Assembly: GCF_006345805.1 (NCBI RefSeq)
Contig: NC_042997.1
Coordinates: 11,222,001-11,286,000 of the forward strand
Reading direction: 5' to 3'
Length of the DNA stretch: 64,000 nt
DNA from: Octopus sinensis
Lineage: Eukaryota
The notes beneath the pieces are model-generated. The model saw only the letters and a program-made list of their open reading frames with translations. It was not told the DNA's origin and searched no databases. The position numbers were made by a program, and so were the translations under genes. This document shows, in pieces, positions 6,425 to 64,000 of the stretch. Positions within the stretch are counted from its first letter, which is position 1, and the number at the start of each line of letters is the position of its first letter.

Positions 6425-6601
6425 GTCTATTTATTGACAAAAGATGAAGGAGGGCGTTCCAAACCATTTACAAACTATTTCCAAACACAGATCTTCAGCC
6501 GAACTTGGGACTGTCCAAGTTTTATGTTGTTAGACCAAGGTAAAGACATGATGATGCCTGGTGAAGATGGGAAAGTTGTTTTCAACCTCTTCAAAAAAAT
6601 G
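6425..6601 (+). CDS. TUFM: Mitochondrial EF-Tu coding exon (domain 3)
   Basis: VYLLTKDEGGRSKPFTNYFQTQIFSRTWDCPSFMLLDQGKDMMMPGEDGKVVFNLFKKM; ttctag| acceptor, |gtaaat donor; phase 0. Confidence 0.95.
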
Positions 6602-6632
6602 GTAAATTATTATTATTTTATTTTTATTACTC

Positions 6633-7025
6633 TTTACTCTCTTTTACTTGTTTCAGTCATTTTGACTGCGGCCATGCTGGAGCACCACCTTTAATCGAGC
6701 AATTTGACCCAGGGACTTATTCTTTTGTAAGCCCAGTACTTATTCTATCGGTCTCTTTTGCCGAACCGCTAAGTAACGGGGACATAAACACACCAGCATC
6801 GGTTGTCAAGCAATGCTAGGGGTACAAACACAGACGCACAAACACAAACATACATACATATACGACGGGCTTCTTTCAGTTTCCGTCTACCAAATCCACT
6901 CACAAGGCATTGGTCGGCCCGAGGCCATAGTAGAAGACACTTGCCCAAGGTGCCACACAGTGGGACTGAACCCGGAACCATGTGGTTGGTAAACAAGCTA
7001 CTTACCACACAGCCACTCCTGTGCC
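6633..7025 (-). mobile_element. SINE family A
   Basis: Full-length reverse copy starting about 30 nt after the TUFM donor at 6602. Confidence 0.88.
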
Positions 7026-8542
7026 TATTGTTATTATTATTATTATTATGTTTTGGCTTTGCTTTAATTTATACAAGCTGTACCTAGGTCGCCTGATTAT
7101 TATTAAAGGCAACAAACTGGCAGAATTGTTTGCATGCTGGGCAAAATGCTTAACGGCATTTCATCCATCTTTACATGCTGAGTTCAAATTCTGCAGAGGT
7201 TGAGTTTACCTTTCGTCCACTCCAGGTCGATAAAGTATCAGTTGAGTACTGGAGTTGATGTAATCAATGAGTCCCCTCCCCCAAAATTTCAGGCACTATG
7301 CCTATAGTAGAAAGGATTATTATTATTATTATTGAGTGAGAGAGCAGTGCATGCCACCAAAGTGACACTGGGGTAAAATATACAAAGCCCAGTATACCCA
7401 TGACTACTCGTCTGATGAGGGTACACCAGGCACATGCATCACAACCATCTGTGTGCAACATGGTGATCTCATATCAAGATTAACAGGGCTGGCAACAAGA
7501 AGGGCATCTGACCATAGAAAATTTACCTCAACAAATTCCACAGAAAAATTGTCCAGTTGCATATATATATATATATATGAGGCTTGTAAATATGGTAAGA
7601 ATGTGAATGGGCAAACAAGCAAAGTGAGGAGAAAGTATGGAAGTTCACTACAAAGGAGTTATTTGTATCCTTTCCCAACCTTAACACTCTGCTGAAAAGT
7701 GGCAAAGAGATGGACTCCAACAATGAACACTTCTCAAAACACAGAGGAATGCACATGTACCGTTTTTACCACATGTCTCTGAGAAGAATTACATTACAAA
7801 ATACATATTTGTGGATTACTAATTCCATGAGCAGGTTGTCCTGTTGACCAAACAACTGAATATTTCTCTATTTCATTAAATTTGCCTCAAGGGCAATACA
7901 GCTGGATACCTCTCAGTGAATCAAAATTCGCTGAGATCCATTTACTTCAATATATTTGTGTGTGTATCAAATAGGTAGAGATGAGTTTGTGGTTGAGAAG
8001 TTTACTTCCTAATCACATAACCTCATGGTTTGGGGTTCATTCCCATTGTGTAGTACCCTGGACAATTGTCCTCTACTGTATCTCCAGGCTGACCAAAGCT
8101 ATATGAGTGGATTTGGAAGAAAGTTCTTCATGAGTGTTACTCTCATACAAGCCATGTTATTTGTTTACAGTTTTCTATAAAAACATGTCCAGCCATGAAG
8201 AAATATTACTTAATTTGGAAACAAATGAGAGTTGACAGCAAGAATATTTGCTTCAACGAATTCCATCTGACTTAAAAGAATGGACTTACAAAATAAAAAT
8301 GATCGTTATGTGCATGTGTGTAAAATAAATTGTTACAATTTTAATATAAATGATAAGCATTATATCAATCTTACCATTAATTTGAAATGGAAAAGAGAAA
8401 ATAGTTTATTTATGTATGTATGTGTTATTTACTCTTTTTTTATATTTTCTTTTGTATAATGTACTAACACTATTTCCTCCTTTTCTTTTTCTACTCCGTC
8501 TTGTTCTTCTCATCACCCTATCCCTGTTTGCTGTTATTTTAG

Positions 8543-8674
8543 GCACTTGAGAAAGGACAACGCTTCACATTGAGAGCATCTGGAGTGACACTTGGATTTG
8601 GCGTAATCAGTGATGTTCTGGCTGATTATGACCCAGCAGAAATGGACAAGAAAGTACGGCAGAAAGACAAATGA
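8543..8674 (+). CDS. TUFM: Mitochondrial EF-Tu last coding exon
   Basis: ALEKGQRFTLRASGVTLGFGVISDVLADYDPAEMDKKVRQKDK*; ttttag| acceptor after pyrimidine tract; TGA 8672-8674. Confidence 0.92.
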   Translation, partial: ALEKGQRFTLRASGVTLGFGVISDVLADYDPAEMDKKVRQKDK

Positions 8675-12335: not shown

Positions 12336-12618
12336 TGTCCGTTGCCAGCCTCGCCTGGACCCCGTGCCGGTGACACGTAAAAGCACCATCCGTTCGTGGC
12401 CGTTTGCCAGCTCTGTCTGGCACCTGTGCGGGTGGCATGTAAAAAGCACCCACTACACTCACGGAGTGGTTGGCGTTAGGAAGGGCATCCAGCCGTAGAA
12501 ACACTGCCAGATCTGACTGGGCCTGATGAAGCCTTCCAGCTTCACAGACCCCAGTTGAACCGTCCAACCCATGCTAGCATGGAAAACGGACGCTAAATGA
12601 TGATGATGATGATGATGA
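12336..12618 (+). mobile_element. 5'-truncated RTE 3'-UTR copy (duplicated at 14635-14918)
   Basis: Matches 44.7-45.0 kb UTR; (GAT)n(ATT)n tail. Confidence 0.8.
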
Positions 12619-14173: not shown

Positions 14174-16078
14174 TATTTACTAGTTACAAGTTTCCTGAGC
14201 CTCAAACATTTTTCAAGGCGACTGGTATAAAGTTCAAATTCTTAATATGCATAGAAGTTATGTCTACCTTGATAACTTCAGCCAAGCTTGGCTAAATTAC
14301 TATAATTTATATCATCATTCCTGCTATGAGTGAGAGTCTATCTTTTTTTGTTGCTGGAAGGGTTTCTTTATGTTTATTCTCATGTCTGTACTTAAGCACA
14401 GGCTAATGCCTGTTAATCTCAAAAACTGCATCCTTCAAAACTTCAATGCTTCCTGAGATTCGCCAACACTACACCTGATTTTCTCCCCTCCATACACAAG
14501 CAAGCATGTATCTGACTCATACACTGCTCACTTTCCAGACATTTGTACATTACTGCATATTCTTTATACACACTTTTGACAAGTTGTGGTGCACCTGAGC
14601 ATTGTATACAATAATTTCAATATTATTATTATCCGTGTCCGTTGCCAGCCTCGCCTGGCCCCCGTGCCGGTGACACGTAAAAGCACCATCCGTTCGTGGC
14701 CGTTTGCCAGCTCTGTCTGGCACCTGTGCGGGTGGCATGTAAAAAGCACCCACTACACTCACGGAGTGGTTGGCGTTAGGAAGGGCATCCAGCCGTAGAA
14801 ACACTGCCAGATCTGACTGGGCCTGATGAAGCCTTCCAGCTTCACAGACCCCAGTTGAACCGTCCAACCCATGCTAGCATGGAAAACGGACGCTAAATGA
14901 TGATGATGATGATGATGATTATTATTATTATTTTAAAAGAACTATTGCACAGCTAGACAGAGGAAAGCATCTTTCTGGTTTGTTAATGTAAGGCTGCCAT
15001 TCTCAACAGAGAGATAAATTTTATCTACTGATACATCCTCTTCAGCAAAATACATGTTCTTGTCTTCATATTTGATACCCATGTTTCACTACCAAACATT
15101 ATCACACACCTTACACATACTTCCTATTCTCTGCCTTTTATCCAGAGAAAGAAATACTTTGTTGACAACAGAGGAAATATCTTCTGACTTTCTTATTGTA
15201 GCAACTACACTTTAATGAGCAAATACAGGACCTTCTATATGGTTGTTCAACATGTTAGAATTACAGTCAAATATTCCTCAAATTACATCTTACTGTATCA
15301 TCAGATAAGTGATTGTCACAGCTGGAATAATTTTGATCAAAAGTTTTCTCAATAACAGCTAATTTAGTGACCTGCAAATATCAATAAAACTTTCCATGAG
15401 GCAGGTAAACATTGACAGATTTGCTTTTAACTTCTTAAAAAAAGTATCCCCACCCTTTCTCTGTTAGAGTTGGTTATTCCCAAGACAAGATTACTTGAAG
15501 TTTGTTGTTGCTACTCTTAGAACAACTTTGAATGGTTTTAATAAGCCATCTTAAGTTTCACAATGTTCATCACACAACAGAATAATAGTAAGACGCGGGA
15601 GGGGGAAAGTCAGAATAATTTTTCAGATTGAGAAATACCTAAGTAATTATTTTTTTTTTTCAAAGCAGAGAGAGAAAGAGAGACAGACAGAGAAGAGAAA
15701 GAGAGAGACAGACGGATAATGCTCGTCCACACACTTCATATAAAAAGTGTATTTGTTCTTTGTATGTATGCATCAAACTTGAGAGCACAAGCCGACTACA
15801 GAGTAACTACTCGACCTGTTAGCATCCAAATACCCATCAAATCTACCTTTACTCTATGAACTAAGGAGGGATACGTTAGATAAAAAAAGTCTAGAATACG
15901 TTATCTGAATATAAAATACGATAGTCATAAATGGAATGCTTTTATTATAGGTCTGTTTGGTCACAGCTTACTTGCTGTTAAACAGCTTAGGACCTAAGCC
16001 TTAGGTGGTAGAGCCACTGCGTGAAGCCGCCACTCACAGTAGCATGTCTGCTTGAAATATCAACTAAATCTTGCTTAA

Positions 16079-21221: not shown

Positions 21222-21749
21222 TCATCATCATCATCGTTTAGCATCCGCTTTCCATGCTAGCATGGGTTGGACGGTTCAACTGGGGTCTGGGAAACCAGAA
21301 GGCTGCACAAGGCCCAGTTTGATCTGGCAATGTTTCTACGGCTGGATGCCCTTCCTAACGCCAACCACTCCATGAGTGTAGTGGGTGCTTTTTACGTGCC
21401 ACCGGCACAGGTGCCAGATGAGTCTGGCAAACGGCCACGATCAGATGCTGCTTTTTACGTACCACTGGCACGGGGGCCAGGCGAGGCTGGCAAACGGCCA
21501 CAATCGGATGGTGCTTTTTATGCGCCACCGCCACGGGGGCCAGGCGAGGCTGGCAATGGCCACGATCAGATGCTGCTTTTTACGTACCACTGGCACGGGG
21601 GCCAGGCGAGGCTGGCAATGGCCACGAACGGATGGTGCTTTTTACGTGCCACCGGCACGGGGGCCAGGCAGGGCTGGCAACGGCCACGAATGGATGGCCG
21701 TTGCCAGCCTCGCCTGGCCCCCGTGCCGGTGGCACGTAAAAAGCACCAT
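21222..21749 (-). mobile_element. RTE 3'-UTR copy with five ~62-bp minisatellite units and terminal fold-back
   Basis: Units start at 21385, 21448, 21511, 21573, 21635; inverted 55-bp copy at 21695-21749. Confidence 0.85.
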
Positions 21750-21932
21750 ATATATATATAAAACAATATGTATATAGGGCAGTCAAGAGCACCTATTAAA
21801 TTATTCTTTTTCTAATTGATTCAAAAAAGCATATAAAAACTAGACAGAAATAAATTAACTTTAAATGAAGGTTTGTTCAAGTCTAGATTGGAGCCAGTTG
21901 TTTTGTCATGAGAAACAGTAATTTAGGCCCTT

Positions 21933-23751: not shown

Positions 23752-24118
23752 TTGTGGCACGTAAAAGCACCATCCGTTCGTGGCTGTTGCCAGCCTTGCC
23801 TGGCCCCCGTGCCAGTGGCACGTAAAAAGCACCATCTGATTGTGGCCGTTGCCAGCCTCGCCTGGCCCCTGTGCCGCTGGCACATAAAAAGCACCATCCG
23901 TCCATGGCTGTTTGCCAGCTCCGTCTGGCACCTGTGCGGGTGGCACGTAAAAAGCACCCACTACACTCACGGAGTGGTTGGCGTTAGGAAGGGCATCCAG
24001 CCGTAGAAACACTGCCAGATCAAACTGGGCCTGATGCAGCCTTCTGGCTTCACAGACCCCAGTTGAACCGTCCAACCCATGCTAGCATGGAAAGCGGATG
24101 CTAAATGATGATGATGAT
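23752..24118 (+). mobile_element. RTE 3'-UTR copy inserted in the Tigger fossil
   Basis: About three minisatellite units plus tail gctaaatgatgatgatg. Confidence 0.8.
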
Positions 24119-24397
24119 GTTTGAAAGTTCTTCTGGGATAATATTGAAGTTAACTATCCATTTGCTGCAGCAAAGAAGTTGTACACTTGGGGCTATATTC
24201 TGTTCTCACATTATTAGAAAACTTAATTAAGTTTACTAGGGGGTTCTTGGTTGCATTGTTTTAAAAAAGCAATGTTTTGCTGGAAATATGTCTGGCACTG
24301 TACCTTTCTACAGTAGGACAAAATCTATTCTTCAAAAAAGGCTCTTAGTCATCCATACCTTCTTATTTGAATACCAAATCAAAAGCAAATTAAATCT

Positions 24398-29964: not shown

Positions 29965-30485
29965 ATGCATAAATTGTGTTATTAGAAAACATGGCATGAA
30001 TTGAAGATTGTGTCTTCAAGAAAATATAAGAAGAAAAGAATTTTGATTACAAGTTTATATCGAATTATCATCTAAAAGGCAGAAAAAATATCATCAAAAA
30101 GACAGAAAACAAAACCTCTAAGAAAAACATGTGCAAAGAATATCAAAAAATATAAATTTTTGAGGATTTACAACTCTATCTTTCATGGAATTTCATTCAT
30201 AATTTAAATAAATATTTTTAAAACCAGAAGATTTTGACAATTAAAACACTGAAATTTGTTTTAAAAAATCTACATGAAATAAAATTTTTGACAGAAAATT
30301 TCCAAAACTGATTGTGGACAAAAATCATTTACCTTTGTGTTGAAAAATCTTAAAAATTTGCTGCTGCTTAGATATCTTCTATATAAAACTTAGTGTATTT
30401 ACTGTGCAACTGAAACACTACTGATGCATCTATTAGAAATTGCATTGGATTTTCCCAATATGACTTTATCATTAAGAATAGAACC

Positions 30486-33400
30486 ATGCACAAAATAGTT
30501 GAATATTTACCTAAATTCAAATTGTCAGTTCATCTCCATCATCAGGTAACTTCTGGAAAATCCTGTCAGCAAATATTGTTACAAGAAACAGTTATCTTGT
30601 TATTCCAGTTGAGTTTTGAATCAAAGAGAAATGGTTGGAATTTAACTTCTCTCTACTTGGTCATTGCTTTTGAAAACAAGTTAGCAATAATTCCTCTGCT
30701 AAAAAATGCAGACAAGTTGCACAGTACCAGGGTATCAATTCAGTTTGTGATATTTTTCATTGCGAATAAACCAAATTCAGAGCATTTATTTTTTATATCT
30801 TATCCTGTCCATGAACTTGTAACTGACATTTCAATAAGTAGTCACAGCAACAAAATGTCCACAGATAAACATTCTTCTCTTAAATCAAGAAAATCCATCA
30901 AAAAGCATCGCTGTGAGTTCTGCAACAAAGAATTCATGAGCAGTTCTGCGTTGGTTATTCATAGACGCTCACACACCGGCTTGCGTCCTTACAAATGTCC
31001 ATTCTGCAGTCGAGCATTCTCTCAAATGACTGGAATCCAGCATCATATTCGTACTCACACCGGGGAGAGGCCATACGTTTGCAACATCTGCCATTTTAAA
31101 TTTTCTCGCTCAGATTCTTTAGCCAGACATATAAAGAAGCGGCATTCAAGCGTTCAAAATGGATTGGTAAAGAGAAAAAAGAAGACTTCAGAAATATCAA
31201 AGAAGCAGCTACTGCTTAGCTATTATAATAATTCCCACTCAGATCCTACTACTTCTCAGCTAACAGACTCTAGTTTTATACTCAATGGTTTTCTTGATGC
31301 ACCCACAGAATTTCAGTCTTCAAATTTAGGAATTAATTCAGATGTACATATTACTGATGATTCTTCTAAAAATTCACGTCTTAAGTTTCCAGATGAAATG
31401 CATTCTCATAATAAAGTAACTGATTCTTTCATCAGAGATAAAAGATATACACATTCTAGAATACAATCTCCAAGATTGAGAACTAAATCCATGGATAAAA
31501 AATATTCGTTTTCAAATTGTAATTTACCTGAATTCAGGTATTCTGAAGCAGCACACCAAAGAATTTCAGTTCCTCAAAATGAAATATCTGAAAATTCTAG
31601 GAAAAATTATAAAAGAACTGAAGAGACATCTTTGCTGCAGTCTAAAGTGAATAAAAGATGTAATTATAACCCAAATATAAGTTATACTAATAATTTGGAC
31701 AATATACACTTTAAAAATGTCAGTGATATAAGTATTTCCTCAGAACTAGAATCTAAGCTTCACAATAAACTAGATAATTACCAACATGCCAACAGAAGAA
31801 ATCTTGATACAAAGAGTGGTGGTAAATATCACAAGTGTTTCTTCTGTTTCAAGTGTTTTGCGAGTAAGTCTGCATTGAACATTCATAAAAGAATTCATAC
31901 TGGCATTCGTCCCTATGTCTGCAAAATGTGTGGTCGTTCATTTACCCAAAAAACTGGTTTGCGGCACCATTATAGGACTCACACACAAGAAAGACCTTAC
32001 AAATGTAGCATTTGCTTCTATGCATTCGCTAGATCTGATTCTCTTTTGCGGCACACAAAACTTCGACACAAGAAGCTGAAGAAAAAAGCCCCTGTTTATA
32101 ACAAGCAATTAAGAAAACCACCTGAATGCTATCCTAATTCAGAGCATTTTTTTGAAAAATCTGGTAGTTTTAAGCAAGTGGTACTTCAAAATGAAAGCAA
32201 TAATTTATTTGAAAATGATCGTCTGGTTGCAAAAAATGTTAATGATCTTGACATTCATGAATATTCTATTAGAAATAATAACAATTCCAACCATGTTTCA
32301 GTTGTTGATTCCACTCTGTTACTCGATCCATTAATAACAGTTTCTGATGAAATCAATTATGGTAGGCATCACGTACAGTCTACAGACTTTAGCAACAGTA
32401 ATTTGAGTTCTGGGGTAGTATTGAATATCGAGAGACCTGAAATCACTCACACAAATTCTCCTATCTACATAACTGATGATGAAGAAGAATTTGATGTCAT
32501 TTCATTCCCAGAAAAAAATGAAGATGTACCTGCTGTTAAATCCTGCTTGAAGCCCTCCACCAATTCTAAAAATACCACAGGAAAATATGGGAAAAAACGA
32601 AACCTTCCTTGTAATTTCTGTCACAAGACTTTCTCTAGTTTCTCGGTGCTGAAAGTTCATAGAAGAATCCACACTGGTGTTAGACCTTATCGGTGTAAGT
32701 TTTGTGGCCGTTCCTTTACTCAACAGACTGGTCTTACCCACCATCTGCGTACTCACACTGGAGAAAAACCCTACTCTTGTGGAAACTGTAATGCCCAATT
32801 TTCCAGATCCGATTCCTTGGCTCGTCACTGGAAACAGCAGCATTTAAAACACTCTAACACAAAAGGTAATCATTTGAAACAGATAAATAGAACTAAGAAA
32901 GATCATGTTAGTTCAAGCAGCACTGATGAAAATTTAAGCATTTCAGCAAAGGATGTCAGGCTTTCTGAATCTGAAACAAATAATGTACAAGAAATAAGTG
33001 ACAATACTTCAAGTTTAGATCAGGTAAATTTTGCATCAGTCGTTATAAAATCTGAAGTTTCTAACGATGAACCTGTTCCTGCTGTTATCTGTGATACTTC
33101 TTCTAAAGAGGATGCTGGCACTGCTGATAAACTGGGAACTGATGATCTCAGTCCAACATGGAAAAGTGGCAGTAGTTATAGAGATGATGGAAATTTCAGC
33201 AATATTGAAATTGAAACCTTTGAACCAGTTCGAAATGCATTTAGTCCTTCCAATGAACCAAACCTACAGTTGAAATGTTCTTCATGCAAAAAAGTGTTTA
33301 ACGACAAAACTCTGTTATCTTCTCATGTGTGTGAGGTAAATACAGAATATCAATGTTTTCTTTGTGATATGAACTTTAACAATACCATATTACTGGCTGA

Positions 33401-36400
33401 ACATATGAGTGAGCAGCATAATTTGAAACAAAACTGTAAAAGAGAAGGTGAGCTGTCACAATTTTCCTTCGAGGATGAATTTGGTTCTCTTGTAGAAATG
33501 GTAATCACCCATAATAATGACAGAGATGTTTGTCGTATTTATCTTAGTGACTTTTCTGAAAATACCCAAACCATAGAAATGAACATGGATGAGAAAATCA
33601 ATCAAAACCTTTCTGATATTTGGGAATCTACAGAGAATAGAAAACTTGAAGTTACTCAAAACTCTCCAGATGATTTTGATTCTAAAGCCAACATTTTCTG
33701 CCAATCTAATTACAATGCAGGCACTATAAATAACCACAAGGACAGTTCTGAAGATATTTTGCAAATTAAACTTGAGCAGGATCAACAGGAAATATCAGAT
33801 ATCGTCAGCCAGAACAATAGTAGCTTTGAGTCTTTCTGCTTGACTAACCAGGAGCAAGAATTTCGCAATGTCTTTGAACCAAATACTAACCCTCTTGGTA
33901 CACAGACAAATGGAATTAATTCTGAGGTTTCTAATTTTGTAGATAATAGCAGCGATGCTGGTATATCCATACCATTGTTGGATCTGAACCAGTGTAAGAC
34001 AGAAGATAACGACAGCAACACTGCTCCATTAAACAAAGATTCTAAGCAAACTAGAAACAAACAGCGCCAATGTGAATTCTGTAAGAAATCATTTAATAGC
34101 AAATGGGCTTTGATTATTCACCGCAGATCCCATACTGGTGAAAAGCCATACGAATGTGGGCACTGTGGCCGTGGTTTCAGTCAGTTATCTGGTGTTCAAC
34201 ATCATATTCTCACACATACTGGTGAGAGACCATTCGAGTGTCAAATTTGTCATTTCAGATTCGCTCGATCTGATTCATTGGTTCGACATACCAGGTTAAA
34301 ACATTCAGAATGTGCAAGAGAAAATGGTTCGAAAGAGGAGCCCAAGAAAGCTTCAACCCTCTCCAATAACCAAAGTTTAGTAAGGGACTTAAGGAATGCA
34401 TATAGTACAGATATGTTAGACATGGAGACAGATATGCAAAACGATTGTACAATGATTGAACCAATGTTACAAGATAAAAACTTGATTAACTTATCAGAAT
34501 ATCCTTTGCTTCTTTCATCTCAAGTGAAGGAACCTGACTCAAAGAAAAATTCTGAGGATCATATTACTTTGAAAGATATCCACAAGGAAGTTGATTTCGA
34601 TAAGGATATTAAAAATTGCAACATGTTAGACTTGTCTTTGCCTCCTTCGAAAGATATTTCTACCAAGCAGATAAAAACTTTTGATTGTAAATTTTGTGGG
34701 AGTCTGTTTCCAAATTCTGATGTTTTATTGCAACATCTAATGTTAAGTCATAGCAATGAAATTATTTTAAATGATATTAAAACAGATATCTTGCTAAAAT
34801 CTGGGCCTGAGCAAAATAAGAATTCATCTCAAGATTCCCTTAGTATTTCTGAGTCCAAAGAAGCTTTAACATTTCAGTCTAGTAATGTTTCATCATTCCC
34901 TGAAAATTGTCTGCAAAGGGATAGCATTTTGCATCTTTTAAAAGAGTATGATCTTGGTATGGTGACAGAAGATAATTCAACTTTGAATAGAGATGAAAGC
35001 AACCCTAATTTCAATGTTGATCTCAAATATATAGAAAATGTTGAAACTATTCCTTTAGACAGGTTAGAGCAAAATGGAGATGGTCAAGAAATGGACCGAA
35101 GTCAAAATTCTTTTCAAAATATCATAGATATTACAGAAACGGACTTTGATTTGAAAGAAACAAGTGTTGATGAAATCATAGAGAAAGATCTTAGCACTAG
35201 TGAAGAAAGAAATCTCAAAGATGTAGATGTTGGCAATGTTGAAGATAATAACAACAACAATAATGATGATGATGATGATGATGATGTTATATGCATCACA
35301 CCTGAGAATTTCCCTTCAAGTTTTCAGATGAATTCTTTGAAGGGTTTTGCTGAAGATTTTCATGTAACTGAAGAGAAAAGTTATGAAGCCTCTTACATAT
35401 CTCTCACAGATAATGACAACATGAGTGCAAGGGAAATAACGGAACAGTCTAACCGAAGCAATTCTTGTAGGTTTTGTGGCAAAAGTTTTCCTACTCAGTC
35501 GGCATTAAAAGTGCACCAACGCACACATACCGGCCTGCGTCCATATAAGTGTCCAACCTGTGACAGAGCATTCACACAGAAAGTCGGACTCCAGCATCAC
35601 GTCCGAACTCATACAGGAGAGCGGCCATATCAGTGTAAATACTGCATTCAGAAGTTTGCTCGGTCAGATTCTTTGGGTCGGCACATAAGACACAAGCATT
35701 TAAAAACAGCCAAGGATTTGAATTCTGTGAGTAACTATCAGAAAAGCCTTGTATCTCCTTTGTCCTTAGAATCAGATGCAAACCAAGAAGCAGCTAGAAA
35801 AAGGGAGATGAATGGAGGAAATTCCAATCAACTGGAATCGAATTTCATTGAGTCACCGGAACATTCTTCTAGTAAAAATCCTAATCAAACGGATTTTGTA
35901 ATGATGACTCCAAATTCATTTGGAGATTTATTTGTATTGGAGCCATCAGACAACCATGTTAAGAATAATCTGAATGAATGCTTCCAAGAATACATTAGTT
36001 ACTCTCGATTGAATGATGATAATCACATTGATAGGAAGACTATGTGTGACCAAATTGAAGAAAGAATGCAGAATAGTTCTTATTCTATTCCTAATACTAG
36101 CCTACTACAGTCTTCTGGTAACACACCAGGCAAGTCATCTGACACAATTGTTTTGGAAGAGATGGCAATAAATATAAGTGATTCTGAATGTAATTCACCT
36201 GAACAAAATACAACAATAAAATATGAAAATGATCTTACCTGTGATATTTGCTGCAAAGAATTCTCTAATTCACACCTGTTAATAAAGCACCTAAAAGATC
36301 ATATAAATGCTAGCAAAGAAACTGCAACCAATCCAGATAAAACCATCTCTGGTCCTGTTCCTACTTGTTATCTTATAGACCTCAGTGATGAGAGCTTAGA

Positions 36401-37103
36401 ACAAAAAACACAAAGTGAATTAGACATTGATCTAATGGAATCTGATTTACTCTCAAATATAACCAAAGAAAAATGCATGGAAAACAAGAATGTAACTGAA
36501 ATACAAGAATTCAATTCAAGAACTGATCCAAAAATAGCCCCCTCTTCATTGACGAACCTGATAGATGATGATAGTCAAACCCAGATTGGTATTGAGAAAA
36601 ATGCTGATAATTACCAGTTGGTTACAGAAACAGAAGACACTAACACAACAACCAGTGTTCTTTCTAATATGATTTCCCCAAATCTCCTGCCCCACCACAC
36701 TAATGTGGTCTCGACGGGTACACGAGGCAATATTACTTGCAGTAAAACCAATAACAACTCTCTTTTAATCATCAAAGACGGTACTAGATTTAAACTCGGT
36801 CACAAAAGGCACATTTGTAAGTACTGCAGTAAAAGTTTTGCTAGTTCTTCCGCCCTTGTGATTCACACTCGGACACACACTGGTGAAAGGCCTTATGAAT
36901 GTGATTATTGTTCACGAGCCTTCAGCCAGGTCACTGGTCTTCGTCACCATATCAGAACACATACGGGGTATAAGCCATACAGCTGTCACTTCTGTTATTA
37001 CCGATTTGCAAGATCAGATTCTTTAGCCAGGCACTTAAAACTGGAACACCAAAAGAGAAACAAAGATTCCTCTTCAGGAACAGATGTCAATGCTATACAA
37101 TAA
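30486..37103 (+). CDS. Large multi-cluster C2H2 zinc-finger protein, single coding exon (2205 aa from ATG 30486; 2082 aa from ATG 30855)
   Basis: 6.6-kb stop-free ORF; six triple-finger modules with TGE/L/I/V-R/K-P-Y/F linkers at 30912-31145, 31836-32069, 32610-32843, 34071-34304, 35466-35699, 36816-37049; four isolated fingers (CSSC..HVC, CFLC..H, CKFC..H, CDIC..H); acidic S/N/D-rich linkers. Confidence 0.95.
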   Translation: MHKIVEYLPKFKLSVHLHHQVTSGKSCQQILLQETVILLFQLSFESKRNGWNLTSLYLVIAFENKLAIIPLLKNADKLHSTRVSIQFVIFFIANKPNSEHLFFISYPVHELVTDISISSHSNKMSTDKHSSLKSRKSIKKHRCEFCNKEFMSSSALVIHRRSHTGLRPYKCPFCSRAFSQMTGIQHHIRTHTGERPYVCNICHFKFSRSDSLARHIKKRHSSVQNGLVKRKKKTSEISKKQLLLSYYNNSHSDPTTSQLTDSSFILNGFLDAPTEFQSSNLGINSDVHITDDSSKNSRLKFPDEMHSHNKVTDSFIRDKRYTHSRIQSPRLRTKSMDKKYSFSNCNLPEFRYSEAAHQRISVPQNEISENSRKNYKRTEETSLLQSKVNKRCNYNPNISYTNNLDNIHFKNVSDISISSELESKLHNKLDNYQHANRRNLDTKSGGKYHKCFFCFKCFASKSALNIHKRIHTGIRPYVCKMCGRSFTQKTGLRHHYRTHTQERPYKCSICFYAFARSDSLLRHTKLRHKKLKKKAPVYNKQLRKPPECYPNSEHFFEKSGSFKQVVLQNESNNLFENDRLVAKNVNDLDIHEYSIRNNNNSNHVSVVDSTLLLDPLITVSDEINYGRHHVQSTDFSNSNLSSGVVLNIERPEITHTNSPIYITDDEEEFDVISFPEKNEDVPAVKSCLKPSTNSKNTTGKYGKKRNLPCNFCHKTFSSFSVLKVHRRIHTGVRPYRCKFCGRSFTQQTGLTHHLRTHTGEKPYSCGNCNAQFSRSDSLARHWKQQHLKHSNTKGNHLKQINRTKKDHVSSSSTDENLSISAKDVRLSESETNNVQEISDNTSSLDQVNFASVVIKSEVSNDEPVPAVICDTSSKEDAGTADKLGTDDLSPTWKSGSSYRDDGNFSNIEIETFEPVRNAFSPSNEPNLQLKCSSCKKVFNDKTLLSSHVCEVNTEYQCFLCDMNFNNTILLAEHMSEQHNLKQNCKREGELSQFSFEDEFGSLVEMVITHNNDRDVCRIYLSDFSENTQTIEMNMDEKINQNLSDIWESTENRKLEVTQNSPDDFDSKANIFCQSNYNAGTINNHKDSSEDILQIKLEQDQQEISDIVSQNNSSFESFCLTNQEQEFRNVFEPNTNPLGTQTNGINSEVSNFVDNSSDAGISIPLLDLNQCKTEDNDSNTAPLNKDSKQTRNKQRQCEFCKKSFNSKWALIIHRRSHTGEKPYECGHCGRGFSQLSGVQHHILTHTGERPFECQICHFRFARSDSLVRHTRLKHSECARENGSKEEPKKASTLSNNQSLVRDLRNAYSTDMLDMETDMQNDCTMIEPMLQDKNLINLSEYPLLLSSQVKEPDSKKNSEDHITLKDIHKEVDFDKDIKNCNMLDLSLPPSKDISTKQIKTFDCKFCGSLFPNSDVLLQHLMLSHSNEIILNDIKTDILLKSGPEQNKNSSQDSLSISESKEALTFQSSNVSSFPENCLQRDSILHLLKEYDLGMVTEDNSTLNRDESNPNFNVDLKYIENVETIPLDRLEQNGDGQEMDRSQNSFQNIIDITETDFDLKETSVDEIIEKDLSTSEERNLKDVDVGNVEDNNNNNNDDDDDDDVICITPENFPSSFQMNSLKGFAEDFHVTEEKSYEASYISLTDNDNMSAREITEQSNRSNSCRFCGKSFPTQSALKVHQRTHTGLRPYKCPTCDRAFTQKVGLQHHVRTHTGERPYQCKYCIQKFARSDSLGRHIRHKHLKTAKDLNSVSNYQKSLVSPLSLESDANQEAARKREMNGGNSNQLESNFIESPEHSSSKNPNQTDFVMMTPNSFGDLFVLEPSDNHVKNNLNECFQEYISYSRLNDDNHIDRKTMCDQIEERMQNSSYSIPNTSLLQSSGNTPGKSSDTIVLEEMAINISDSECNSPEQNTTIKYENDLTCDICCKEFSNSHLLIKHLKDHINASKETATNPDKTISGPVPTCYLIDLSDESLEQKTQSELDIDLMESDLLSNITKEKCMENKNVTEIQEFNSRTDPKIAPSSLTNLIDDDSQTQIGIEKNADNYQLVTETEDTNTTTSVLSNMISPNLLPHHTNVVSTGTRGNITCSKTNNNSLLIIKDGTRFKLGHKRHICKYCSKSFASSSALVIHTRTHTGERPYECDYCSRAFSQVTGLRHHIRTHTGYKPYSCHFCYYRFARSDSLARHLKLEHQKRNKDSSSGTDVNAIQ

Positions 37104-45814: not shown

Positions 45815-46297
45815 CTAGGCTACAAATTCGTACCGCACTGGTTCTAGTAGAGTAGGTTTATTTTTAGCAATTGATACAAAGTGTCTTTTGACAGGACCTG
45901 CAGGCTGTCTCTTTAAACAAACGCGGACTCCTTTAGCTTTTGCTTCAGCTTTCAGTTTGCTACATTCGACAATTCTCTTACGGAAATCTTCTTGACACTT
46001 GGATGGTTTCACGTGTTCGATCCTCAGATTGATCCTCTTTGGGATGATGCGATGCTTCACTCGTTTATTGATGATCACCCCAACGGCGTGTTGTGTTACG
46101 TTGAAGACACGTCCCGTACGACCGTGGTAGGATTTATGCGGCATACCTTTTTGCACACCTCCGTCACCTTTAACATCGACCAAGTCGCCACGTTTGTAAA
46201 CTTTCATGTAAGTGGACAGCGGAAGGACTCCGTGACGCCTGAATGCCCTGGCGAACATATGCCGGGTACCCCGGCGATAACCTTTTGTGTTTGTCAT
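45815..46297 (-). CDS. RPL21: 60S ribosomal protein L21 (eL21), paralog 1
   Basis: Intact 160-aa [15 protein letters not shown]...[19 protein letters not shown]...RINLRIEHV...EPVRYEFVA*; acceptor ttttcag| 16 nt before ATG. Confidence 0.97.
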
Positions 46298-55003: not shown

Positions 55004-55021
55004 GAACTCAAATTTGTGAAA

Positions 55022-55504
55022 ATGACAAATACAAAAGGTTATCGTCGTGGTACTCGGCACATGTTTGCCAGGAGATTCCGCCGCCATGGAGTCCTTCCAC
55101 TGTCTACTTACATGAAAGTCTACAAACGTGGTGATTTGGTCGACGTTAAAGGCGACGGAGGTGTGCAAAAAGGTATGCCGCATAAATCCTACCACGGTCG
55201 TACGGGTCGAGTCTTCAACGTAACACAACACGCTGTCGGTGTGATCGTCAACAAACGAGTGAAGCATCGCATCATCCCAAAGAGAATCAACTTGAGGATC
55301 GAACACGTGAACCCATCCAAGTGTCAACAGGATTTCCGTCAGAGAATCGTCGAATGCAGCAAACTGAAAGCTGAAGCAAAAGCTAAAGGAATTCGCGTTT
55401 GTTTAAAGAGACAGCCTGCAGGTCCTGTGAAAAGGCATTTTGTGTCAATAGCCAAAAATAAGCCCACAGTCTTGGAACCAATCCCCTATGAATTCGTGGC
55501 ATAA
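55022..55504 (+). CDS. RPL21: 60S ribosomal protein L21 (eL21), paralog 2
   Basis: Intact 160-aa ORF from ATG 55022 ending EPIPYEFVA*; AATAAA at 55673-55678. Confidence 0.97.
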
Positions 55505-59358: not shown

Positions 59359-59717
59359 TGCATCATCATCATTTAGCGTCCGCTTTCCATGCTAGCATGG
59401 GTTGGACGGTTCAACGGGGGTCTGTGAAGCCAGAAGGCTGCATCAGGCCCAGTCTGATCTAGCAGTGTTTCTACGGCTGGATGCCCTTCCTAACGCCAAC
59501 CACTCCATGAGTGTAGTGGGTGCTTTTTACGTGCCAGACGGAGCTGGCAAACGGCCACGGATGGATGGTGCGTTTACGTGCCACCGGCACGGGGGCCAGG
59601 CGAGGCTGGCAACGGCCACGATCGGATGGTACTTTTTACGTGCCACCGGCACGGGAGCCAGGCGAGGCTGGCAACGGCCACGAACGGATGGTGCTACGTG
59701 GCCGTTGCCAGCCTCGC
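59359..59717 (-). mobile_element. RTE 3'-UTR copy with terminal fold-back
   Basis: (CAT)n tail at 59359; 21-bp perfect inverted repeat 59662-59682 / 59697-59717. Confidence 0.8.
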
Positions 59718-59911
59718 ATGATAAAAACTATTGCATTTTAAATATGCAAGGCTTTTCTGAAGTTCAAAATGTAACACTTTTTGTTATCGTGGGTGGCATA
59801 ATGATGTTATGCGTTAATAGTGTGTTGAATTTAACTTTATTAATGTATCTTGAATTAGATATATATACAAGATCTGATATACATGTACATACATTTCTTA
59901 TTTCTGTACTG

Positions 59912-60337
59912 CCTACAAGGGGGTAGACACAGAGGGGACAAACGGATTATGTCAATTATATTGACCCCAGTGTGTAACTGGTACTTATATAAAGTGTCAA
60001 GTTGGCAGAAACTTTAGCACGCTGGGCGAAATGCGTAGCCGTATTTCGTCTGCCGTTACGTTCTGAGTTCAAAATCCGCAGAGTTCGACTTTGCCTTTCA
60101 TCCTTTTGGGGGTCGATAAATTAAGTACCAGTTACGCACTGGGATCGATATAATCGACTTAAATCTGTCTGTCCTTGTTTGTCTCCTCTGTGTTTAGCCC
60201 TCTGTGGGTAGTAAAAAAAAAAAAGTACTTATATAATCAACCCCGAAAGGATGAAAGGCAGTCGACCTCAGTGGAATTTGAACTCAGAATGCAGCAGCAG
60301 ACGAAATACTGCTAACGTTTCTGCCAGCTCACTGCCT
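59912..60337. mobile_element. SINE B (+, 59992-60224) nested in an oppositely oriented SINE B
   Basis: 11-bp TSD gtacttatata at 59981-59991 and 60225-60235; poly(A) tail. Confidence 0.85.
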
Positions 60338-62020: not shown

Positions 62021-64000
62021 CCCTTTCATTATTATATTTCTGACCAAAAAACATCCCTCATGAGTTTCAATTAAATTCTAAAATAATCATGAATTTAGAC
62101 TAGTTTCATTAAACAACTATAACTTTTTTACTTATCAACATATTAATGTGATATTTGGAACATAATTGACGAAAGGGTTCTTAATCAATTCCATTGCATA
62201 ATTTTTGTCTCAAAGTGACTAATTACAGGTAAATCCAGGTAAACTGAGCAAAAGGTAAAAAATATTAAAATTTTGTTTAAACATTACCATAGAAAATCAA
62301 TCCTCAGCTAATATTTGAGGTATGCAACAAAATTTTGATATAGAAGAATTGTGCACATCACTAGATTATCAGTTGAATTTAATGCACAGAACAGGTGTAC
62401 CATAAAGGTAAAATAAACTGAAATATTAGAATTTGTTTTTGAAGAAAACTAGAAAATTAAAGACAACTGAATGAAATATACTCGCACACATACATGAATA
62501 CACAGGAACATATATAATAAAGATTTACAATAGAAATTAAATCAAAACTTGTCATTCACCTTACAGGCAAATTAAAAAGTTAAAACTAAGTAAATTTGAA
62601 AAATATTTATACAATCTAATTATACATATATACAAACAATATTTACATTATATTTCTATCATGGAAAGTTGTAAAACATCCCACTCTACATACTGCAACC
62701 TTGCGGAATCCACATTGGAAGGATGTTTCAACTGGCCGTCCACTGGGAGTTTTTCTTTTTTGATGTACACATTCACGGCACTGCCTTTTGCGACACCCGA
62801 TTTTTTTCTAATTTATGTAGATCGGCTGAACTCGGAGGAATATCTCTGGCAGGCTTTGCTTTTCATTCCTGCAGTTATTTATTTTGAGGAATATCCTGCC
62901 CGGAACTGCAGATGGTCGCACCGCTTACGAACCCCTCCTGATTTGGTATATAATATAAATGCATTTACAATGCTCATGTTTATTATATACCAAACCAGGT
63001 ATCGCCACCATTTATTACCCGGTCTACCAACCGGATAATAACTCATCATCTGGTTCAGCCAATCCACACCGCCCATGTACTTGTTATAATCAAGGTTCAC
63101 AAACGGAGTGCCATTTTCATCTACACATGGTTGTGCACTGGTAGATAGAAAATTTATCTGCCTCTTATCTCTGTATCCAGTCGCTAGCAGATTTTCTTTC
63201 TGCCATTGGATTATTTCACCTCTTTTTTTTAATTTTGCTTTTTTTATATCCAACGGCAGCCCCTTTTCTACTAGCAATTACTGTAGAACACGTATACGTT
63301 GCCACAGCTTCTAAATCCTCCGCAAGTTTGACCGAATTGAAAAATCAGTCAAAAAATAATATATGGCCCTGGTTATGGTATGGAAGTGATAAATTCCAGA
63401 CCACATCGTACCCTAGGCCATGCTGACTTACATAATTGTCTCTTTTCCCTGTATAGAAGTTAAATCCACAGCAGTACCCACTATTTGCTTCACATATTTT
63501 CCAAACTTTGATCCATTTTGTGGGCTTTCCTGGCATATACTGCCGAAAACGTACTCGGCTTTTATAGCCCACCATACCCTCATCGATAGATAAATACGTT
63601 CCAGGGTTGTAAAATTTTTTGTAGGCATTTTGAACACCATCAATGAGGGGTCTTATTTTAAATAAGGGATCAAAGTTTGGTTCTCCATGTACGGGGGTAC
63701 TGCTAGTGTCTCTCACATGTAAATACTGGCTCAGTTTTACAAATCGTATTCGGGTCATAATACTGGAAACAATGATCCCCAAAAAGTTCCCGATTGCTCC
63801 AGTAATTCGTAATTCTGGGCAATTACCTTATGCCCATAATATTTATGGCAAAAAAATGCCCGCATTTCTTCTACGGTTGTTGGGTACCACAAGCTATCTT
63901 TTTTTCAAGCTTGTTTACTTTCTGCATAACGGTTTGTCTCTGCAGTTATAGCTTCAAACAAGCATACAGGAAAAAAAAAAAATTCTATTGGTCTCGCTGC
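62021..64000 (-). mobile_element. piggyBac transposon relic with frameshifted transposase (PGBD-like), continues past window end
   Basis: Motifs DPLFKIRPLID, LSIDEGMVGYK, FRQYMPGKP, DYNKYMGGVD, KWWRYL..IINMSIVNAFILY and Cys-rich C-terminus CRECVH..CGFRKVAVCRVGCF; terminus TTAA|CCCTTTC at 62017-62027; several frameshifts/stops. Confidence 0.9.

Follow-up and report, generated by a model that had tools for sequence, protein, structure and literature searches.

Background

The HIVEP/Schnurri (ZAS) proteins have paralogous clusters of zinc fingers that lie far apart, each beside acidic and Ser/Thr-rich sequence, and that recognize similar DNA motifs. The Spalt/SALL proteins have spaced double-finger units, each of which repeats a conserved "SAL box" recognition helix, and the Sp/KLF and EGR proteins have a single C-terminal triple finger with family-specific helices (a unit of 81 amino acids (aa) in Sp/KLF). 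Drosophila D1 and HMGA1 carry many low-information AT-hooks on a flexible chain, and bind and bundle repeated DNA by avidity. Drosophila SU(VAR)3-7, whose zinc fingers are spaced far apart, is a component of heterochromatin and requires sumoylation for its function (PMC2910048). The subject of this report is a gene of Octopus sinensis that encodes a giant C2H2 zinc finger protein with six spaced triple-finger modules, located on contig NC_042997.1 of assembly GCF_006345805.1 (positions 11,222,001 to 11,286,000, forward strand); this entire stretch of 64,000 nucleotides (nt) is referred to as the window, and all positions are counted from its first nucleotide.

By analogy of architecture, HIVEP/Schnurri, Spalt/SALL and SU(VAR)3-7 would be the best precedents for the octopod protein, and none of them has six triple units with the same code. 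HIVEP/Schnurri proteins have two finger pairs rather than six triples, share only the C2H2 fold with the octopod protein and gave no specific match among those listed in our searches; the likeness is architectural only and the octopod protein falls outside the HIVEP/ZAS family. Spalt/SALL is a precedent for a helix code repeated within one protein, but its units are pairs rather than triples, its helices are different, and it has an N-terminal repression motif and a separate family history. SU(VAR)3-7 is similar in spirit, combining spaced DNA-binding units with SUMO-related motifs (those of the octopod protein being putative), but has seven single fingers instead of triple modules and is not homologous. 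Zif268/EGR resembles a single octopod module in being a self-contained three-finger unit with canonical linkers and with Arg, Asp and Arg at helix positions -1, 2 and 6 of finger 3, and Zif268 chains are among the structure matches; however, EGR proteins have one such unit of three fingers that read G-rich DNA, whereas the octopod protein has six, with the contact sets S-S-A-I and Q-T-G-H in fingers 1 and 2 and HX4H spacing in finger 3. With six units of 78 aa, of which only finger 3 is EGR-like, the octopod protein belongs to neither Sp/KLF nor EGR. The multi-AT-hook satellite binders are proposed as a functional analogy only: their DNA-binding fold is different, and a link from the octopod protein to satellite DNA would be conjectural.

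Six triple-finger modules with one set of contact residues

A regular-expression scan of the translated open reading frame (ORF; Table 1) for the C2H2 pattern identified 21 fingers, 18 of them in six modules; the total in the octopod protein is 22. Every module is exactly 78 aa (234 nt) long and has the same plan (C-x2-C-x12-H-x3-H, a 7-aa linker, C-x2-C-x12-H-x3-H, a 7-aa linker, C-x2-C-x12-H-x4-H), and modules 1 to 6 are separated successively by 230, 180, 409, 387 and 372 aa. The linkers between fingers inside the modules (TGLRPYK, TGERPYV, TGEKPYE and similar) are of the TGE[KR]P type. The base-contacting residues (helix positions -1, 2, 3 and 6) are S/T, S (W once), A (V once) and I/V in finger 1, and Q, T/S/V, G and H in finger 2; in finger 3 they are R, D, S and R in all six modules, with Ser at helix position 1 in every module and HX4H spacing. 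The protein is a member of the C2H2 class (PF00096, 246 bits against a cutoff of 25.2, E = 1.4e-75; PF13465, 235 bits against a cutoff of 40), and its nearest solved structures are the DNA-bound arrays of ZNF568, Aart, CTCF and Zif268. Pfam scans of the whole protein and of its N-terminal 123 aa found only finger families, with no KRAB, SCAN, BTB/POZ or ZAD domain. In the Argonauta ortholog, finger 1 of module 2 has Ser in place of the structural Leu at helix position 4 (SKSASNIH versus SKSALNIH), which may represent a weakened finger or a sequencing error.

Comparison of the six modules indicates that the contact residues are the most conserved of the positions that are free to vary: mean pairwise identity is 0.82 over the 12 contact columns versus 0.33 over the remaining 34 columns without a structural role (p = 7e-5 by the Mann-Whitney test and 3e-5 by permutation). 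In fingers 1 and 2, positions 1 and 5 of the helix are nearly unconstrained (identity 0.07-0.27). Contact identity between the three finger classes is only 0.012; thus, a module consists of three different fingers in a fixed order. The reverse pattern was found in a background set of 248 other poly-zinc-finger proteins gathered in the homology searches (two octopod proteins among them), in which mean contact identity is 0.215 (maximum 0.51), below a framework identity of 0.43, and the best contact identity at a period of three fingers in any of these proteins is 0.42. With modules 180-409 aa apart and a contact identity of 0.82, the octopod protein is not a member of the tandem poly-zinc-finger expansions, and no close paralog was found among the matches listed in a full-length homology search. 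The initial annotation of this DNA had described six 234-nt modules with the contact residues given above, a single reading code, variable non-contact helix positions and a layout different from the usual tandem arrays; these features were correct in place and in detail, and the layout differs also from that of the two octopod poly-zinc-finger proteins of the background set.

Age of the multiplication and selection on the modules

The modules are 53-67% identical to each other in protein sequence and 56-63% in DNA sequence, the only repeats left in the DNA are short (60-76% identity), and the proportion of synonymous differences (pS) between paralogous modules is saturated (0.88, range 0.79-0.95). 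Recent duplication or gene conversion as the source of the shared helices is excluded by this DNA identity together with the saturated pS. When the 12 modules of Octopus and Argonauta were clustered, they formed six orthologous pairs at distances of 0.06-0.12 that join each other only at 0.32-0.41; thus, the six-fold layout is much older than the split between Octopus and Argonauta.

The ratio of nonsynonymous to synonymous substitution rates (dN/dS) between Octopus and Argonauta, calculated by the method of Nei and Gojobori, is 0.04 in the modules (dS 1.3) and 0.37 in the linkers, with 0.10 in a conserved island of linker 3 and 0.02 in a finger-containing island of linker 5. None of the 72 contact residues has changed between the two genera, in comparison with 42 of all 468 module residues, and the modules of O. 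sinensis differ from those of O. vulgaris by five synonymous and no nonsynonymous changes. These comparisons support maintenance of the contact code by purifying selection. The suggestions made in the initial annotation that the module DNA is heavily diverged and that the modules arose by an old internal multiplication kept under selection agree with the saturated pS, the orthologous pairs, the low dN/dS and the unchanged contacts.

Linkers, lone fingers and conserved motifs

The sequences between the modules had been described as unrelated acidic or low-complexity linkers. The lengths given for them were accurate, but only linkers 3, 4 and 5 are acidic (net charge -33, -45 and -23, respectively), whereas linker 1 carries a basic net charge of +12 and linker 2 is neutral, and the linkers are not featureless: they contain four lone fingers (Table 1) and about 20 short islands that are conserved in Argonauta within otherwise fast-evolving sequence. 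Such a pattern is as expected of disordered tethers that would bear linear motifs. All four lone fingers carry the signature F-x-N/D-x3-L-L-x2-H, and Pfam searches of the islands that contain them gave only weak matches of C2H2 type. The linker-3 island, with two of the lone fingers, is 68-82% identical to its Argonauta counterpart and matches zf-C2H2 at 27.6 bits, barely over the Pfam cutoff; its AlphaFold2 model is uninformative (pLDDT, the predicted local distance difference test score, 44).

Among the other conserved islands, a KRKKK patch directly after module 1 looks like a nuclear localization signal (NLS) in its sequence, and three hydrophobic-acidic islands (SPIYITDDEEE, DDDDVICITP and CYLIDLSDES) resemble SUMO-interaction motifs (SIMs) in form. 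Linkers 1, 2 and 4 each contain a copy of the short motif N-S-x-x-[HY]-I-T-[DL]-D (31335-31361, 32454-32480 and 34548-34568, all on the plus strand); good conservation in Argonauta is limited to the copy in linker 2. This recurrence hints that the ancestral repeated unit may have included linker sequence in addition to the three fingers.

Predicted DNA recognition

The DNA-binding part of the protein would consist of a Zif268-type three-finger unit in six copies, each of which should read approximately the same 9-10-bp site because the base-contacting residues are common to the six copies. RSDSLLR, the finger 3 helix of module 2, has served as a GTG module in a CXCR4 zinc finger nuclease (PMC3077364), and a bacterial one-hybrid screen yielded RSDSLTR in two selections on GTG and one on ATG (PMC1920264). 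The most likely target of finger 3 is therefore 5'-GTG; these engineered precedents narrow the G(C/T)G predicted for finger 3 in the initial annotation. Finger 2 (Q at -1, G at 3, H at 6) probably reads approximately G-N-A according to general recognition rules, and finger 1 (S at -1, A at 3, I/V at 6) would add little, with a weak, perhaps T-rich preference. A rough guess at the whole site is 5'-GTG GNA TTN-3'. Avidity is proposed as the source of strong, specific binding because this guessed site carries little information.

Several modules on tethers of 180-410 aa, probably disordered, might engage several copies of the motif simultaneously. Such copies might sit next to each other in a cluster or a tandem repeat, or on separate DNA segments that would thereby be joined. 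By rough polymer scaling, 180-410 disordered residues would have a mean span of approximately 10-20 nm and a much greater one if stretched out; thus, neighbouring modules could reach motif copies separated by tens of base pairs or located on a different DNA segment. The NLS-like and SIM-like motifs and the four lone fingers might recruit partners. We infer that the modules bind DNA, that all six have the same specificity, that they act by avidity or bridging and that the linker motifs have roles of this kind, and we hold at roughly even confidence that the protein is a hexavalent reader of one short GTG-containing motif that binds clustered or repeated DNA by avidity.

The evidence for modules of identical specificity would also fit an ordinary single-site transcription factor with redundant modules that bind one at a time, raising the on-rate or hopping, with no bridging or binding of repeats, and nothing in the sequence demands that the modules bind simultaneously. 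Pure redundancy should, however, allow some copies to decay, and all six modules are equally constrained (dN/dS 0.024-0.059 at dS of approximately 1), which makes mere redundancy improbable; a single-site factor is regarded as an unlikely explanation of the architecture.

Several points weigh against a hexavalent DNA reader. Binding of DNA by the modules is a prediction from sequence; finger 1 is without the classic base-contacting side chains; the codes of fingers 1 and 2 derive from general rules only; and specificity might be shifted by the small differences that exist from module to module (W in place of S, V in place of A, and the T/S/V variation at helix position 2 of the second finger). 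A count of the guessed motif (GTGGNATT) in the 64-kb window showed no enrichment (15 matches versus 10.8 +/- 2.9 expected), which is a weak test given the small amount of sequence and the rough motif. The ligand of the conserved helices could just as well be a repeated RNA or protein, in which case the protein would be a scaffold. Such a role would fit the residues missing from finger 1, the weak, sub-threshold matches of the lone fingers to finger families of dsRNA type and ZNF451 type, and the ribosome-biogenesis connection of the human namesake, ZNF236 (discussed below), but finger 3 has the classic Zif268-type set of R at -1, D at 2 and R at 6 in helices that have been used or selected on DNA triplets, and TGE[KR]P-type linkers between fingers are typical of DNA-binding arrays; a non-DNA ligand is considered very doubtful.

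An extension of the hexavalent-reader hypothesis, offered as a speculation that is rather improbable in its full form, is that the protein is a "molecular staple" restricted to octopods or cephalopods, in which six readers of the same specificity, on long flexible tethers, would bring together many copies of the GTG-containing motif, whether from a satellite, a family of transposable elements or a gene family arranged in clusters, to form a nuclear hub or loops, and the SIM-like motifs would couple these to SUMO-dependent chromatin bodies. If this were true, the staple would be a cis-encoded alternative to the oligomerization of known architectural zinc finger proteins.

Relatives in other genomes and the relationship to ZNF236

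A search with the full-length protein (best 120 matches, cutoff 445 bits) gave, after two octopod proteins, generic poly-zinc-finger giants with no more than 30% identity over long pieces and a few short pieces (4-5% of the query) with 41-55% identity. When the six modules were masked, leaving the linkers and lone fingers, only the O. vulgaris and Argonauta proteins were found. A profile built from the 12 modules of Octopus and Argonauta was used in an exhaustive search of 1.84 billion protein representatives (best 150 retained, cutoff 540 bits, below which proteins with four or fewer true modules would rank). The results were dominated by giant poly-zinc-finger proteins, and no non-octopod protein with such modules was found among the best 150; since a protein with at least five such modules would exceed the 540-bit cutoff, no other protein of the library has as many. 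Rescoring of all 250 retrieved proteins domain by domain gave 140-152 bits for the octopod modules and at best 94 bits for a domain from any other protein. A metagenome scan with the module returned only generic fingers (best 98 bits). Within the protein, linker and profile searches, no well-characterized bilaterian ortholog with the same six-triplet layout was encountered.

The principal rival to a novel hexavalent reader is that the protein is the octopod ortholog of bilaterian ZNF236, with a clustered layout that was inherited and with the function of ZNF236. The fingers of human ZNF236 are in separate clusters, including an N-terminal triple and a further group towards the C-terminus. Vertebrate ZNF236 resembles the octopod protein in being a giant, poorly characterized C2H2 protein with many fingers and without KRAB, SCAN or BTB domains; it differs in having approximately 30 fingers rather than 22, and no homology of the linkers was detected in the linker-only search. 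The link between the octopod gene and ZNF236 rests on database names, "finger 236-like" in O. vulgaris and "zinc finger protein 236-like" in Argonauta. Zebrafish Znf236 also has nearly 30 C2H2 fingers (PMC11620358), knockdown of ZNF236 in K562 cells caused a ribosome-biogenesis defect (Perturb-seq preprint), and ZNF236 is mentioned in a recent preprint at a genome-wide association locus for recombination.

Against orthology, vertebrate ZNF236 is not among the best 120 matches of the full-length search (445 bits) or the best 150 of the profile search (540 bits), near the top of which a protein would rank if it had 7-8 clusters that carried the octopod code and each scored over 100 bits, although weaker similarity could lie below these two cutoffs; the best non-octopod domain among the 250 rescored proteins falls far below the octopod modules; the linker-only search returned octopods only; and the octopod gene is intronless. 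These results argue against a vertebrate ZNF236 that shares the six-fold code, and orthology with ZNF236 is judged to be possible but less than probable. It would be compatible with multivalent DNA binding, although most of the novelty of the octopod protein would then be lost.

Gene structure and start codon

A protein identical to the predicted one is already present in the NCBI and UniRef databases. The window protein has collinear, single-exon orthologs in O. vulgaris (CAI9714938, "finger 236-like", 99% identity), O. bimaculoides (XP_014771470, "uncharacterized protein LOC106870020", about 96% identity) and Argonauta hians (GAB1598165, "zinc finger protein 236-like", 57-62% identity). The Argonauta gene is one uninterrupted exon in the same neighbourhood as in Octopus, and the two proteins can be aligned collinearly with every module and every lone finger matched. 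We read the locus as a protein-coding octopod gene without introns that occurs as a single copy and is shared by Octopus and Argonauta; its product, of approximately 2,100 aa, is probably nuclear. The gene was previously annotated and is uncharacterized, a literature search with its accession numbers found nothing, and what is offered here as new is a reading of its architecture.

A very long intronless ORF in an AT-rich region, of which the first 123 codons look unconstrained, might raise the suspicion of an annotation artefact or a decaying pseudogene. However, the 6.2-kb reading frame is unbroken in four species, the TUFM-RPL21 synteny is kept in Argonauta, and dN/dS is 0.04 in the modules and 0.37 in the linkers. 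Such an origin has almost no credibility and is rejected on the basis of the module dN/dS and the absence of change at all 72 contact residues.

The constrained protein probably starts at Met124 (30855) rather than at 30486, judging from the evolution of the intervening 123 codons, in which differences between Octopus and Argonauta are distributed evenly over the three codon positions (42/40/47); compared with O. vulgaris, substitutions amount to 1.9% in this extension but to 0.43% in the remaining coding sequence (CDS), i.e. the extension evolves 4.4 times faster, with a ratio of synonymous to nonsynonymous changes of 3:4. In the gene model of Argonauta, the first residue is the Met aligned with position 30855, and a Pfam scan of the N-terminal 123 aa gave no match to the extension. 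On the other hand, the ATG at 30486 is kept in Argonauta and the extension has no in-frame stop codon versus 5-12 in the other two frames, so that an open frame would rarely be expected by chance. No account suits both the conserved ATG with its open frame and the non-coding-like evolution well; a weakly constrained leader peptide, an alternative start and chance are the candidates.

Neighbouring features

The features of the locus and of its surroundings are listed in Table 1. Upstream, the O. vulgaris model of the mitochondrial elongation factor gene TUFM extends to approximately 460 nt before the zinc finger ORF (approximately position 30004 of the window), about 21 kb past the coding exons, which may indicate a long 3' untranslated region, read-through, or misassigned 5' exons of the zinc finger gene. 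Downstream, the two intact RPL21 ORFs are similar to each other over the CDS only, with differences mostly at third codon positions and with unrelated flanks, and an RPL21 gene that likewise lacks introns occupies the corresponding place downstream of the zinc finger gene of Argonauta (92-94% protein identity). These copies look like retrogenes under selection rather than dead pseudogenes. Two similar spurious ORFs belong to a repeated element, pieces related to which are located near 12470-12598, 14770-14898 and 23976-24142 and are also present at the Argonauta locus. The element is probably an interspersed repeat, and a Pfam search with one copy gave no match. The DDE_Tnp_1_7 ORF is either a transposase remnant or is interrupted by the end of the window.

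Table 1. Coordinates of the zinc finger gene, its modules and motifs, and neighbouring features in the window
Feature	Position	Strand	Description
Longest ORF, single-exon CDS	30486-37103	+	2205 codons plus stop; octopod "ZNF236-like"/uncharacterized C2H2 protein
Doubtful N-terminal extension	30486-30854	+	123 codons; frame open in four species, non-coding-like evolution
Constrained CDS from Met124	30855-37103	+	2082 aa; collinear with 2046-aa Argonauta protein from residue 1; purifying selection throughout
Module 1	30912-31145	+	Helices SSSALVI / QMTGIQH / RSDSLAR; dN/dS 0.039; profile domain score about 150 bits
Basic patch LVKRKKKTSEISKK (KRKKK), directly after module 1	31164-31217	+	Conserved in Argonauta; NLS-like
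Module 2	31836-32069	+	Helices SKSALNI / QKTGLRH / RSDSLLR; dN/dS 0.055
Hydrophobic-acidic motif SPIYITDDEEEFDV, linker 2	32433-32498	+	Conserved; SIM-like
Module 3	32610-32843	+	Helices SFSVLKV / QQTGLTH / RSDSLAR; dN/dS 0.059
Conserved island, linker 3	33213-33584	+	Two lone fingers, surrounded by a 110-aa conserved stretch, and motif FSFEDEFGS.VEMVITH...RIYLSDFSEN
Lone finger, linker 3	33276-33332	+	Atypical C2HC
Lone finger, linker 3	33354-33419	+	C2H2
Module 4	34071-34304	+	Helices SKWALII / QLSGVQH / RSDSLVR; dN/dS 0.026
Lone finger, linker 4	34686-34751	+	CKFCGSLFPNSDVLLQHLMLSH; conserved flank
Conserved motif DDDDDDDVICITPENFPS, linker 4	35262-35327	+	SIM-like
Module 5	35466-35699	+	Helices TQSALKV / QKVGLQH / RSDSLGR; dN/dS 0.034
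Conserved island with lone finger, linker 5	36153-36338	+	dN/dS 0.02
Lone finger, linker 5	36240-36302	+	CDICCKEFSNSHLLIKHLKDH
Conserved motif CYLIDLSDESLEQKTQSELDIDL, linker 5	36348-36437	+	SIM-like
Module 6	36816-37049	+	Helices SSSALVI / QVTGLRH / RSDSLAR; ends 17 aa from C-terminus; dN/dS 0.024
Mitochondrial EF-Tu (TUFM-type) exons, upstream	about 6425-6691, 8486-8671	+	Synteny with Argonauta and O. vulgaris
Repeated element with similar spurious ORFs	21267-21761, 59402-59926	+	MDGSTGV.E.RRLH.AQ.DLA.FLRLDALPNANHSMSVVGAFYVP...
Intronless RPL21 ORF	45815-46297	-	160 aa, intact; Pfam Ribosomal_L21e (153-154 bits for the two copies)
Intronless RPL21 ORF	55016-55504	+	162 aa, intact; Pfam Ribosomal_L21e
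piggyBac-type transposase fragment, DDE_Tnp_1_7	63345-63782	-	109 bits, profile positions 73-212 of 349

Implications for cephalopod zinc finger proteins

Poly-zinc-finger proteins are usually read as one long array of fingers with diversifying helices. In the octopod protein, selection has acted in the opposite way: six copies of one three-finger code have been kept (at an Octopus-Argonauta dS of approximately 1, the duplications being much older) while the rest of the sequence drifted. As far as sequence evolution goes, the evidence supports an old internal multiplication that was retained for the reading of a single motif, and a multivalent bridging function would be a reasonable inference. 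The protein thus may be a clean, testable case of built-in multivalency that gives specificity from a low-information motif, and it is a candidate architectural or repeat-binding factor in the cephalopods, whose genome organization and zinc finger expansions are under active study. If it is instead a divergent ZNF236, the same logic might help with the human gene, for which the ribosome-biogenesis phenotype is the only functional lead found here.

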